Source: Pavona decussata
Taxonomy: Eukaryota
Reading direction: 5' to 3'
Assembly (NCBI GenBank): GCA_977016875.1
Contig: CDRNST010000013.1
Coordinates: 992,001-1,056,000, forward strand
DNA: 64,000 nucleotides
Shown: positions 6,963-15,249 of the stretch, piece by piece
Position numbering within the stretch: the first letter of the stretch is position 1
Layout: each line of letters opens with the position of its first letter
Notes under the pieces: generated by a model
What the model was told of the DNA's origin: nothing
What the model saw: the letters and a program-made list of their open reading frames with translations, nothing else
Databases searched by the model: none
Made by a program: the position numbers and the translations under genes

Positions 6963-7198
6963 CAGGGCGTACCCAATCGATGAAATCGATGATCGATGAC
7001 AATCGATGACAATTAATCGATTGATATTGATAATCGATGAACAATCGATCGTCCAGGTTTGTGTGATTATCGATTGTCATCGATTATCAATATGAATCGA
7101 TCAATTGGCATCGATTGTTATTGATTATCAATATCAATCGATTAATTGGCATCGATTGTCATCGATTATCAATATCAATCGATTAATTGGCATCGATT
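6963..7198. repeat. Left TIR plus subterminal array of 16 ATCGAT hexamers (copy 1)
   Basis: Counted by eye; interspersed with ATCAAT/ATTGAT and TAAT/ATTA. Confidence 0.9.
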
Positions 7199-8018
7199 CT
7201 TTAACAATTTTCATCTATTGGTTATTATTGTTATTTTCAGTCATGATTTCCAAAGGCAGAGTCTCTTGATGCATTTTAATGACGAAAACAATGACATCAT
7301 TGGCAGAAGATCGAGGTTTTTTTACAACTTGACAGATAATCAGCTTAATTCTGCTTAACTGAATAAAGTTGTATAGCTGTATAGCATACACATGCGTCTT
7401 GTCTTTTCGCATTTCCCGTCCTTTCCTCTGGTTTGTGCTCGATGAAAGTTACAACAATCTGATTTTATTAAAAAAAAAAAAAAACAATAAACTTGAACTT
7501 TGAAACCCAAACATCTAGAACATAACGTGAAAACACTTACAGTTTACTTACAGAGGCGATTTTTGATGTAATTGTTGTCGCGATTTTCATTGTTGTCTCG
7601 CTCGCGCTGCAACTCAAATTCTACCTGTTATCACAAGGCGTTGTGACCTTACGACGAAAACGACATCATCCTTTTTTGTAAGACGTGTTTACGCATTTAC
7701 CACATTTCGTAGACATTCTAGCTAGTGATCAAAATCGCAACTCGTTGCAGCACTATCACGAGAAAATACGCAGTGGAAATCGCGGAAATTGCAACAAAAT
7801 CGCCTGTGTAAACGAGCTGTATTAATTTTGAACGGGGTGGCCAAAAGTGTCAACTGTTTGCAACTTTGAAGTCCAGTTTACAGGAATTCACTTTCAAACT
7901 ATAACGATGTTAATAGTTTTATACCGCTTTCAAAAAAGTACCTCGCACCAATCAGTGGCACATTAGTAGCCCGGCCTCGGCATAAACAGTAGAACCCATG
8001 TCTATTAGACTGTAACTG

Positions 8019-8570
8019 TCACCACAAAAGCGGTTTACATTTACTTGCGCAAAAAAAAAAAGAGGTCAACAACAACAGCAGCAGTGCAAGGAGTATGGAA
8101 AACAGACAAGTTAGTTCCTCGAAAATAAGTGTTGCTTGAATTGACATCAGTGTGTTAATGACGTGAAGGTAAATCGCGTTTGCCATGTACGCATTGATCA
8201 GATCAATCATAAACAGTAAAAGCAGTAACAGGTGGATCACTCTTTCTTTTTTTTCATCAAAATAATAGATAAACTTTGAAGGCTGTACAATTTTACGTGC
8301 ATGACAAAACCGCGAAGAAGTGGAAGGAGAAGAGCAGGTACTCGCTTTTGCAGTGAGAGACTCGGCAGAAGTGTCCAAACTGTGGCTTGTAGTGCTTTCG
8401 TGACCAGTAGCAACTGTGCTTGTAGCGGAGGCTGTACATGTCATATTGTTTGCTTTTTCCCTTGCCGCTATAACTTTCTCGATCAGGACCGTTTTTTTCC
8501 AACTTTTTTTGTACGGCTCGCCCATTTCGTCCAAAATTTCGCGCAATAACGTAATGGTCATATCATTCAT
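8019..8570 (-). CDS. HeH/SAP/LEM-like helix-extension-helix domain, Ser/Thr linker and hydrophobic (TM-like) tail; in frame with and directly after the transposase
   Basis: MTITLLREILDEMGEPYKKSWKKTVLIEKV fits the HeH/SAP pattern; homologue at 57743-57958; separated from the transposase by TAA-ATG-AAT-GAT-ATA-TAA, which overlaps a 15-bp tandem duplication (8560-8589). Confidence 0.6.
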   Translation of the reverse strand: MNDMTITLLREILDEMGEPYKKSWKKTVLIEKVIAAREKANNMTCTASATSTVATGHESTTSHSLDTSAESLTAKASTCSSPSTSSRFCHARKIVQPSKFIYYFDEKKERVIHLLLLLLFMIDLINAYMANAIYLHVINTLMSIQATLIFEELTCLFSILLALLLLLLTSFFFCASKCKPLLW

Positions 8571-8585
8571 TTATATATCATTCAT

Positions 8586-11906: not shown

Positions 11907-12840
11907 CTAAAAGTTAAAATTATCAGATCAAAATAAGGTGGGCGAAATTACGAGCTGTGCTGTTGGGTACTGAGAAGACTGGAGAAGAGTAGTACTGTAT
12001 AACATTACTACTGACCCAATGGAGGTCATTATTAAAACTAAGAAATACTGAGTTAAACTGTTCTTAATGAACGAATAATACACTGTATAATAACAATAAT
12101 AAACAGGTATTGAACTAACCTTGTCAATATTGTCGCTTGCCAACAGTGATGATACTAAGGTCCTCTCTTGGTCTGGTCTTGTTGTTGGTAAGACATGTAC
12201 TCCTGATGAGGAAGACTTTGAAGAGGTTCCTTTGCTCGTTTTGGAAAAAAGTCTGTCATATCTCTGCATCCTGTTGAGAACAATAATTTGATCAACTGGA
12301 TCAAGTATTTTTCTGCTCAACTTCCCCGCAGGCAAATCAAAGCAGCTGATGAAAGTCACGACGTGTTCAGAATCAGCAAGGTTGTTATCCCTGTGACTCA
12401 CTTACTCACTCACTCGACTGCCCATTTGAACCCGGGAGGGGAGGGGGGAACGGGCATTTGAAACCCTTAACACCAAACACTTTAAAAACGATTGTAAACC
12501 CTTGAAAGCCCTTGTAAACACTTTCAAAACCCTTTTCGTTTTACTTCCAAAAAAACTCTGATCTACTCGATTAGTAAAGCAGGAGTTTACCTTGTTGCAA
12601 AAAAAATTTTTTTTCTAGTCTGTATGCCTGTCATGCAGTGTCATGTCATGCTTCACCGCGGATGCGTTTTAATTCATTGTTTTCGCAGGAAACGCTCAGG
12701 AAACACGTGGTGTTGGATGTCGTCAGCTGTTCTTTCAGGTTCTTTCCAGTTCGTCAGATTTCATCAGTCGAGCGGTCAAAACAAATTCGGTATTCTGCGA
12801 ACGTATTTCTGTTTTACTGCTGTTTTGTGTCAAGGTCATT

Positions 12841-14609
12841 ATGGGTAATAATACAGTCACTGTGAATAATAACGAAATCGTTCAAGTTGAAGCAAGCGAA
12901 GAATCTGCTAAGCTGAAGGTCAGTCTGGTACTCGCAATCAATCATTGAACTGAACTGATTCATCAGATTCATTCATGGCGAAACCGGCAAAAACTTATTA
13001 ATAACCGTCACGTTTTTTGCAGATCACTGTGGAAATACCGGCCTCGGAAAAGGAGAAAGTGCTCCAATTTGTAGAAGGATGTGGCGGCAAGGTTTTCGAT
13101 GGTAAGTTCACTCAGGTTATAAAGTCCAACAGCACTTTCAAAGCAAGCTAAAATGTGTAGCCGTTTTTCAGTTTATTAAAATCCGATCAATCACTTCATT
13201 CTTTAAATCTGTTTAAATCTAGCAGGCGAGGGAGAGGTGGCTGAAACAGAAACTCCATCTACGATCGCAAAGGCCGTAAGAGGTTTCATTCAAAAACACC
13301 CGACCATCTCAGTTGGATTTTTTGCAAAAGAAATCGTCCGACGCTCGCAGGGCACGTTATCCACGCTGTTGAATAACCCGCCCTCTACTTTCCCATCTGG
13401 CGCTGGAAGAGAACCGTGGGAAGCCATGAAAAAGTTTTTGGCGAGTGAGGACGAACAAAAAAACCTGCTAGAAAGGAAAGGTGAGTATAATTATTTTACT
13501 GAATTACTAAGGCGATGTTGTGACCACATCACTGCTATGTCCTGGGGTTTTTTAATAAAAACCAGAAAAAGTAAATAACCGCAAAGTAAAACGTGTGAAA
13601 TAGGAAATGCCACACCCCCAAAAAAACCCCTGAAATATCCTGAATATTACACATATTAACTTCGTTACTTCTGGGTTTTTTTGCATGTGTTTTCTCTGAT
13701 TTTCTCTGGTTTTCTCCACCGTCAGCGAGAAGTAAAGGTAAGGGCGAGCTGAGCCTGCAGGCTGTGCAGAGCACAGACACAGCCCAAACCGCTCAAACAG
13801 ATCCAAACAGTGGACCAAAAAAGAGGAAGACGTTTGACAAAATGGAGCTGGCAGCAATGGACACGGTATATAAAGCGTCAAAAGGGCTGCCGACAAGCTC
13901 GATGATAGAGCGTCTGACGTCGTCACTGGGCCTCGAAAAAGACCAGGTATTATGATGTTTTATAAACGTAAAATGAGTGCTAAAATTAGTAAAATTTACC
14001 TCTCGGCTTGGATCGTTTCACATTGTTTTCATTGTCAAGTATCCAACCAGCTTTCACTTGATGAACCGCCTCCCTTGAATGCCGTTTTAGCATCCAAACA
14101 GCTTTATGGGTTTTCTGCGGATAACTTAGAGTCACTTGACAAGCATCGCATCTTAAACTGCTTTCAAAGTTGTCTGGCGAAGAAATCGAACATCCCAAAG
14201 AATTAAGCTGCTTCAGGATAGTATTAAGGCTCGTGTGAGGTGCACCAAAGGTATTCAAAATCGGCAGAAAAAGGATAACCAGAAGGGAAATTCTTATTGA
14301 ACTCCTGAAAAATCAGCTACACCTTCCCTACACGTGGGTGAGTTGGTGTTACCAAAGTCTCTGTGCGTGCTTGCACCACGCCAGTGACTATTGTAGTTGC
14401 GGCCAGGGTCACTGTTGCGCAGAGTGTAAAAAAAAAAAAACTGAAAAAAGTAGGATTTATGCTAATAATGGGAATAATTTCATAATAACTAATAGCATAT
14501 TGTTTTTTTTCTTCTACAGGTATCCACCTGGTTTCAAAATCACCGCCGCTTGGAGAGAACCAAGGCGTATACACCAGGGCAGTACGCGCTGGAAGAGGAT
14601 ACTAGTTAA
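12841..14609 (+). CDS. CUT-domain plus homeodomain protein (single CUT, ONECUT-like architecture), about 241 aa, 5 exons: 12841-12918, 13023-13101, 13223(or 13226)-13480, 13726-13946, 14520-14609
   Basis: All introns are GT..AG and phases join into one open frame of 726 nt. CUT: IAKAVRGFIQKHPTISVGFFAKEIVRRSQGTLSTLLNNPP...GREPWEAMKKFL. HD: KKRKTFDKMELAAMDTVYKASKGLPTSSMIERLTSSLGLEKDQ|VSTWFQNHRR. AATAAA at 14658. Confidence 0.88.
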
Positions 14610-15087
14610 ACCAGATTTGTAATGCAGCTGACGCTGAACTGAGAATGAACTGGAATGAATAAAGAGATAAAATACAAAACATGCGTAATCATTTGTGAAT
14701 TTATTTTATTCATGTTTTATTGTGTTTAATTACAGTTATGTTTATGATTTAAAACTTCCAAAGCAACGCATTGTTGAGCTGATTGTTGTATTTTGACTGT
14801 GTTGTACGCTAGCTGTTCTACGTCACACGCAATCTCAGCTCGGTGTAATTCTCAGAATTCTGGATAGAACTGACTGGTATTACTGACAATTCCATGTTCT
14901 CAGCGTGTGGGCAGAGACCTGTTGGAATACTAAGAAAAATAAATTAAAAGTTTTGCATCGGATCTAGGTACGACGCAACCATTGCGTAGTTAAAATTGAC
15001 AGATGGACAAAATGGCGTACGAAATAACTTCGATTTTTGATGTGATACATTGAAGTAATCTTTTTGATTAGAGAAAATATGAAACCC

Positions 15088-15249
15088 CAATCAATGACAA
15101 TCGATGATTCATGAACACTTTTGTGTGATTATCGATTGGTTATCGATTGGCCGATACCAATCGATGCCAATTAACTAACATACATCGATTGGCATCGATT
15201 GATCGATTGCTTTTCCGATCATCGATTTTCATCGATTGGGTACGCCCTG
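15088..15249. repeat. Right subterminal array (9 ATCGAT) plus TIR (copy 1)
   Basis: Counted by eye; ends ATCGATTGGGTACGCCCTG. Confidence 0.9.

Follow-up and report, generated by a model that had tools for sequence, protein, structure and literature searches.

We analyzed a 64,000-nucleotide stretch of the genome of the stony coral Pavona decussata (hereafter the window, in whose numbering positions are given) and found that 6963-15249 is a DNA transposon of ~8.3 kb with two genes of its own, one for a transposase and one for a protein with a CUT domain along with a homeodomain (CUT-HD). Both ends of the element are arrays of ATCGAT, the core site of CUT-class proteins (PMC4077741; bioRxiv 10.1101/2021.12.10.472091). 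The same gene pair recurs at other loci and in other species, and the evidence points to an undescribed two-protein transposon family across cnidarians. On balance we think it rather likely that CUT-HD would bind the arrays and stand in for a THAP finger in marking the ends. Given where the transposase transcript starts, CUT-HD probably has a regulatory role as well.

The limits of the element were read directly from the DNA. A perfect terminal inverted repeat (TIR) and a 7-bp target-site duplication (TSD) enclose both genes, and a TSD of the same length is found in four other copies, five in all; 6963-15249 is a mobile element. The features of its ends are:

6956-6962, no strand: left TSD, GTATAAA, by direct reading, identical to 15250-15256
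6963-6985, plus strand: left TIR, CAGGGCGTACCCAATCGATGAAA, 23 nt, 100% complementary to 15227-15249
6963-7200, no strand: left subterminal array, 16 ATCGAT sites, mostly AATCGATG, spanning 6976-7197
7062-7073, plus strand: composite motif TGTGATTATCGA, ~100 bp inside the left end
15086-15249, no strand: right subterminal array, 9 ATCGAT sites spanning 15100-15236, including a composite motif at 15124-15135
15227-15249, minus strand: right TIR, pairing as an inverted repeat with 6963-6985, perfect over 23 nt
15250-15256, no strand: right TSD, GTATAAA, by direct reading

A sequence-only reading of this stretch had proposed one TIR/TSD-bounded unit with 16 ATCGAT sites on the left and 9 on the right, and had named ATCGAT as the core recognized by CUT-class proteins. 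The unit and both counts were recovered here, and the two sources cited above back the core. ATCGAT occurs 49 times in the window against an expectation of 10.8 +/- 3.0, and shuffled sequences never held more than 20; 37 of the 49 sites fall in the four ends of two elements, with 12 belonging to a second element described below. The array sites are predominantly the asymmetric 8-mer AATCGATG, with usual spacings of 10, 14 and 17 bp. In the left array the outer half is oriented inward and the inner half is reversed. Because outer sites point inward and inner sites the opposite way, each end forms a ~240-bp local palindrome. The arrays are mirror-oriented at both ends in every lineage examined. 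The composite motif TGTGATTATCGA is oriented identically at both ends, 100-125 bp inside; it recurs, with orientation unchanged, at 15124 (the right end), 56955 and 61500 and in four other copies (C382, L005, L003 and L013).

The CUT-HD gene has five exons with GT-AG borders and 241 codons:

12842-12919, plus strand: exon 1, with ATG at 12842 and a GT donor, matched by a cDNA block of the relative L031
13023-13101, plus strand: exon 2, a small conserved N-terminal module starting ITVEIPASEKEKVLQFVEG; the L030 and L031 cDNA blocks end at 13101
13223-13480, plus strand: exon 3, the CUT domain (by Pfam) and a family-specific helix extension; a cDNA block ends at 13480
13726-13946, plus strand: exon 4, a linker and homeodomain helices 1-2, by the Pfam Homeodomain model
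14520-14609, plus strand: exon 5, recognition helix VSTWFQNHRR, conserved YxPGQ[YF] tail and stop, by comparison and cDNA

Searched one by one, the exons match the Pfam models for CUT (PF02376, E 3.7e-10) and homeodomain (PF00046, E 1.1e-5), both of which pass the cut-offs. Two database proteins, P0111 and P0112, were used as full-length stand-ins; they are encoded by the spliced cDNAs L030 and L031, from a relative that is ~80% identical, and the cDNA blocks break at the same exon borders. The spliced CUT-and-homeodomain gene that had been proposed is thus backed for both its domains and its borders. P0111 matches CUT at 8e-9 (35.8 bits) and Homeodomain at 1.3e-12 (47.8 bits), and in its predicted model the CUT domain consists of five helices and the homeodomain of three, the best matches being the DNA-binding domains of ONECUT1 and ONECUT2. 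The N-terminal module is modeled as a low-confidence fold (predicted local distance difference test, pLDDT, 31-42). We note that in the cDNA contig L030 (134-910) an unrelated open reading frame (ORF) with a weak Fibrinogen_C match is spliced or fused upstream of CUT-HD exons 2-5; this join could be chimeric or an alternative first exon.

The structure of the transposase gene is defined largely by RNA. A 5.76-kb spliced contig, one in each of two metatranscriptome runs, aligns to 9300-11906, 12120-12269/70 and 13999/14000-14931, and its joints (11906 to 12120, and 12269/70 to 13999/14000) are GT-AG on the minus strand. The ATG at 12269 opens exon 2, and the frame continues into 11906. The features are:

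14000-14931, minus strand: exon 1, 5' untranslated region (5'UTR), stops in all three frames, antisense overlap with CUT-HD exon 5
12120-12270, minus strand: exon 2, start codon 12269-12267, 50 Ser/Thr-rich residues without cysteine, by the RNA joints
8586-11906, minus strand: exon 3, with a coiled-coil N-region, P-type helix-turn-helix (HTH), split RNase H core, PHD finger and C-terminal conserved region; stop at 8586-8588
8586-11768, minus strand: transposase ORF, 1060 aa
7955-8570, minus strand: remnant of the transposase tail, with an HeH/SAP-like motif, Ser/Thr-rich linker and hydrophobic C-terminus, out of frame with the main ORF

The 5' end of the transposase mRNA lies at 14931 or beyond it, beside the right-hand array. 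By these RNA-defined exons, intron 2 of the transposase gene encloses CUT-HD exons 1-4 in antisense, and the fifth CUT-HD exon overlaps the first exon of the transposase. The plain head-to-head layout given earlier is therefore replaced by a CUT-HD gene nested antisense in the 5' intron of the transposase gene. At 14520-14931 the transposase 5'UTR exon (minus strand) overlaps the last CUT-HD exon and its 3'UTR (plus strand), and this sense/antisense overlap is a possible source of double-stranded RNA or transcriptional interference.

The spliced contig also bears on how the transposase could recognize its ends. Exon 1 is noncoding and the encoded N-terminus is cysteine-free (Ser/Thr-rich, with a coiled-coil-like stretch after it), so a THAP finger is absent. 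Among the findings that the sequence-only reading had set against its own proposal was a THAP exon in transposase cDNA; the cDNA contains none. Three diverged homologues, from Oculina, Clytia and a metagenome (P0017, P0024 and P0004), likewise gave no Pfam domain, THAP or other, in their N-termini. Structure prediction likewise shows a transposase with neither a THAP finger nor another recognizable sequence-specific N-terminal domain.

The sole Pfam match of the 1060-aa ORF is a PHD finger (residues 763-815); Tnp_P_element, TNP-like_RNaseH_N, GBD and RNaseH_C gave no match up to E 10, and sequence searches of the PDB left the P transposase unmatched, whether by phmmer or by a 17-sequence family profile. 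Its language-model neighbors in ESM-Atlas are TNP-like_RNaseH/GBD (P-element) clusters. An AlphaFold (AF2) model of residues 125-725 (pLDDT 80.9) aligns with the Drosophila P element transposase (6p5a_A) at Z 27.2 and a root mean square deviation of 4.0 Å over 406/442 residues, covering residues 128-566 of the latter (HTH, RNase H and insertion domain); Foldseek gives E 4.5e-10 for the same comparison. The next structural matches are Transib, the best of them at Z 11.5, and RAG1 (the two at Z 10-11.5), and then Hermes (Z 8.7). A hAT reading, raised by the CAGGG termini, was rejected on fold, with Z 8.7 for Hermes versus 27.2 for the P element. Structure prediction thus shows an HTH followed by an RNase H core that an alpha-helical insertion domain interrupts. 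Residues D245, D347/D349 and E582 (ORF numbering) are invariant in 17 homologues at P element-like spacing and form a candidate catalytic triad. We read the predicted fold as that of a very divergent branch of the P superfamily, outside all Pfam models. The earlier label of P-type stands by structure and by language-model neighbors only, and gains no backing from Pfam or PDB sequence matches.

Toward its C-terminus the family carries a tail that is conserved across lineages (P0004, P0008, P0013 and P0017), an HeH/SAP-like motif and then a long hydrophobic membrane-like segment, reminiscent of inner-nuclear-membrane proteins. Pfam HeH is recorded on the homologues P0010, P0012 and P0017. Three long ORFs of 833-1077 aa elsewhere in the genome (L021 5321-7822, L022 4168-7401 and L023 4335-7547, at C382, C215 and C339) are 23-27% identical to the transposase core and have no Pfam match; they may be a P-like sister family.

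The two genes are linked at at least 11 loci or species with differing flanks, and they have diverged together: identities between transposases and between CUT domains correlate across nine loci (Mantel r 0.75, p 2e-4). The sequence-only reading had called for a test of co-occurrence, and both observations favor its proposal. The Pavona decussata genome has at least six loci where a family transposase and CUT exons are neighbors: two at C13 and one each at C382, C49, C218 and C88. Elsewhere the pair is adjacent in Oculina patagonica, where a CUT and homeodomain gene of 239 aa is annotated, and in three contigs from coral metagenomes; in Clytia the two genes are more widely spaced. Two copies at C90 (L011 and L012) are deletion derivatives in which transposase residue ~460 is joined to the homeodomain exon. 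Transposase homologues were found in cnidarians only, at ~43-45% identity across anthozoans and a hydrozoan. With this linkage and co-divergence, the element encodes within its TIRs a second, conserved protein of DNA-binding type, as two-protein transposons such as PIF/Harbinger and CACTA do.

Are the CUT-HD genes of these elements simply host homeobox genes? A tree of 135 CUT domains sets 53 element-type domains apart from 82 CUX-like and host domains (Shimodaira-Hasegawa-like approximate likelihood ratio test, SH-aLRT, 82). The host has an ONECUT-like CUT-HD gene (L024 at C233) with the canonical Ser-Gln-Gly helix, which falls outside the element branch. Three hallmarks of the element type are absent from host genes: a small module at the N-terminus, a lengthened fifth CUT helix and a tail of the form YxPGQ[YF]. 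The comparison thus gives no indication that the element CUT domains are orthologous to ONECUT, CUX, SATB or COMPASS. The sequence-only reading had asked whether CUT-HD homologues are mostly single-copy host genes; the closest ones adjoin the transposase family and have a branch of their own.

Several loci at the margins of the family are less regular. In Clytia (L001) a distance of 6-8 kb, occupied by satellites, separates the transposase from the CUT and homeodomain exons upstream of it, and element ends were not found there. In the same Clytia hemisphaerica locus a palindromic MITE-like (miniature inverted-repeat transposable element) unit of ~430 bp (20510-20945) is ATCGAT-rich and lies 6 kb from the transposase gene, with termini CAGACCCCCGCGC and flanks TATAAA. 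The stretch beside CUT-HD in the C49 copy (L008) was rejected as an end array; it is an 86-bp tandem array of CCAATATTGG-type words, not a TCGA array, and the true ends of this copy lie beyond the DNA that was covered. At four CUT-HD loci (L026-L029) no family transposase was found by tblastn or profile comparison. Two of these, L028 and L029, look like something else: on these metagenome scaffolds (L028 1075-2974, L029 1469-7565) a 1055-aa ORF that has no Pfam match and is unlike the family transposase is followed by three single-CUT ORFs in tandem, all on the same strand, and their CUT domains group with the Clytia copy. The distant CUT matches include P0045 and P0046, a 'cut-like 1' protein of Branchiostoma that has four CUT domains and one from catfish with eight matched stretches.

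Within a lineage the ends repeat one and the same word, and other lineages use other words. The 8-mers are:

AATCGATG: the window copy and the C382 copy
AATCGATA: the second element in the window, L003, L004 and C119
AGTCGAT[AC]: L005
AATCGAAC: Oculina, L026 and L027

In SATB1, Thr/Ser401-Gln402-Gly403 at the start of helix 3 make base contacts, and CUT domains in general conserve these residues (PMC1976457). Ser-Gln-Gly is retained in the element proteins with the exception of the AATCGAAC lineage (L002, L026 and L027), which has (Ala/Ser)-Lys-Ser; L004 has Lys-Gln-Ser at the base-contact positions. The use of AATCGAAC instead of AATCGAT thus coincides with Lys-Ser replacing the base-contacting Gln402-Gly403. 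Residue 50 of the homeodomain also varies by lineage (Q, N, R, I or T). This co-change of motif and residues is how a coevolving protein-site pair would be expected to look, with one clear switch in the present set.

The window contains another member of the family, diverged and decayed, that is ~44-50% identical to the first at the protein level:

56847-61562, no strand: second element, TIR CAGGGGGTATCTAATCGAT, TSD ATTTATA, AATCGATA arrays
57965-59731, minus strand: its transposase remnant, with stop codons
60955-61209, plus strand: its CUT exon, still open

Two other copies deserve mention. The one at C382 (2366457-2385462; L006 and L007) is 97% identical to the window copy, with ~19 kb between its TIRs and TSD GTTTATG. 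Its transposase has frame breaks, and it contains two CUT-HD copies 10.7 kb apart, which could stem from duplication within the element, from nesting of one copy in another or from the assembly. The L005 element (4223-12457) is full, with TIR CAGGACGTAACAAGTCGATC, TSD TGGTATC and AGTCGAT arrays, and adjoins an ORF with a piggyBac-type DDE_Tnp_1_7 domain; it is apparently inserted into that gene.

The arrays are widespread in the genome. At least 40 further places in the genome resemble the 238-bp left end, and a pattern of three ATCGAT words with short gaps has 2369 matches in the genome versus 71 for a reversed control, some of them plain (ATCG)n repeats. The matches are often paired 0.6-1.2 kb apart, as short non-autonomous elements would give. 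These data show short non-autonomous derivatives that keep only the arrays at hundreds of places genome-wide, their MITE structure being read from coordinates alone.

We propose that these elements form a cnidarian cut-and-paste transposon family that would need two element-encoded proteins. In this scheme the CUT-HD protein would bind the lineage-specific 8-mers (here AATCGATG), 9 to 16 per end, and would mark and organize both ends, so that the transposase could work on the CAGGGCGTA termini. Since the transposase mRNA starts beside the right array and its 5' intron carries CUT-HD in antisense, transcription of the transposase could be under the control of this binding too, in the way that P-element repressors act via transposase-binding sites. 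The results support the proposal of the sequence-only reading that CUT-HD is an end-recognition or regulatory subunit, and those of its refutation tests that could be run here all favored it; that it binds the arrays and is needed in transposition beyond regulation is what we infer from them. The fullest version, in which CUT-HD is a working transposition subunit that replaces THAP and coevolves with the end word, and in which the derivatives seed clusters of CUT-class sites readable by host ONECUT-like factors, is a tentative extension to which we give a little less than an even chance.

The alternative that survives best is that CUT-HD is a transcriptional regulator only, a repressor or activator of the transposase promoter or a copy-number control, and that the transposase finds the ends itself. 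The transcript start and the antisense nesting would suit such a role, as would the composite motif TGTGATTATCGA, whose shared direction at both ends is closer to what regulation would call for than to the symmetry of a transposition signal, and CUX proteins are known repressors via ATCGAT (PMC4077741). We nevertheless consider a purely regulatory role unlikely, because the arrays are mirror-oriented at both ends in every lineage, because they are kept in hundreds of short derivatives with no gene to regulate, and because the transposase has no recognizable sequence-specific domain for subterminal sites.

CUT-HD could also be a passenger, a host gene fragment captured once; the protein on the arrays would then be the transposase itself or a CUT protein of the host, for example its ONECUT-like one. 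DNA transposons do capture host genes, and the host owns a CUT-HD gene with the canonical helix, L024. There is no selection signal between the two youngest copies either: the window copy and the C382 copy differ at 9/726 exon versus 11/1561 non-exon positions, as expected for post-insertion drift. The gene has, however, stayed open, spliced and linked from anthozoans to a hydrozoan while the transposase diverged to ~43-45% identity; its N-terminal module, extended fifth helix and YxPGQ[YF] tail are conserved family-wide, and its base-contact residues shift with the element's own motif, as those of a passenger would not. We therefore regard capture without function as improbable. That a host CUT-homeobox gene merely neighbors a transposase insertion, with the ATCGAT sites as its regulatory region, would be allowed by the single-locus picture only and is refuted, as both genes lie inside one TIR/TSD-bounded unit and many other loci and species have the pair again, each time between different flanks.

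A number of observations weigh against a CUT-HD protein that works at the ends. On the window copy, four RNA runs gave no plus-strand splice joints, and coverage of the CUT-HD exons is low and unspliced. The same copy has a small indel patch at ~8586-8640 that breaks the transposase frame relative to P0001 and the C382 copy, and thereby cuts off the conserved tail with its HeH-like and hydrophobic parts. DNA binding could also reside in the transposase, in the P-type HTH, the conserved C-terminal region or the HeH/SAP-like motif. Protein-protein prediction for P0002 (730 aa) with P0111 (229 aa) returned a score of 0.00, which is no answer either way. Several decayed transposase copies had no CUT exon detected within 10 kb, and, conversely, L026 and L027 of the AATCGAAC lineage have CUT-HD and a family-type end array with no recognizable transposase. 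Finally, the three loci that share the switch in motif and residues form one clade, so the switch counts as one evolutionary event.

Several known systems share parts of this arrangement. The coral element is like the Drosophila P element and THAP9 in its core fold (HTH and RNase H split by an alpha-helical insertion domain, Z 27.2), in the coiled-coil-like stretch ahead of the HTH, in short TIRs with binding sites internal to them, in TSDs of 7-8 bp and in non-autonomous copies that arose by internal deletion (PMC7776569). It differs in having no THAP and no Pfam P-element match even at E 10, and also in (i) its TSD, 7 bp against 8 bp; (ii) the PHD finger and HeH/hydrophobic tail of its transposase; (iii) its 9-16 sites per end, against one 10-bp site; and (iv) a second gene that encodes a likely site-specific binder. 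In Repbase, TSDs of the P superfamily are 7-8 bp. Galileo, a member of this superfamily in Drosophila, also has multiple binder sites along long foldback-like ends (PMC3688188). Its binder is the transposase's own THAP, whereas the candidate binder in the coral element is a separate CUT-HD protein.

Outside the P superfamily, TnpA of CACTA (En-Spm) elements is a separate element protein that binds a short subterminal motif repeated in both orientations and affects element expression. Unlike the coral genes, however, both CACTA products come from one transcription unit by alternative splicing; the transposase is of the plant CACTA superfamily and TnpA is not a homeodomain protein. PIF/Harbinger elements, which have a TSD of 3 bp, use another transposase superfamily and a partner that is Myb/SANT-like rather than CUT plus homeodomain. 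They resemble the coral family as proposed here in mobilizing many MITEs and in needing two separate element-encoded proteins for mobilization, the latter as described in PMC2836001. The CUT-HD protein itself is like ONECUT/CUX factors in having one CUT domain followed by a homeodomain, in its structural matches to ONECUT1 and ONECUT2 and in the ATCGAT core (PMC4077741). Unlike them, it is short (~230-260 aa), forms a separate branch, has its own N-terminal module, extended fifth helix and YxPGQ[YF] tail, varies at homeodomain residue 50, and is encoded by a multicopy gene inside transposon ends. Targeted full-text literature searches turned up no account of any transposon whose partner gene is of the CUT or homeobox type, in line with the sequence-only reading, which knew of no such system.

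Transposon ends are known to be recognized by, among others, THAP, BED, Myb/SANT, paired-like HTH and TnpA proteins. If our proposal is true, a CUT-homeodomain partner would be a further solution to this problem and, as far as we found, the first homeobox gene to serve as a transposon's own accessory gene. The transposase extends the P superfamily to a very divergent form, beyond all Pfam models, with a PHD finger and a nuclear-envelope-like tail. The four end words, AATCGATG, AATCGATA, AGTCGAT and AATCGAAC, together with the matched protein variants, offer a natural series for change in CUT and homeodomain specificity. The family also bears on mis-annotated "extra" homeobox genes in cnidarian genomes, and, by scattering hundreds of clusters of CUT-class sites in the coral genome, on the rewiring of regulatory networks by transposons.

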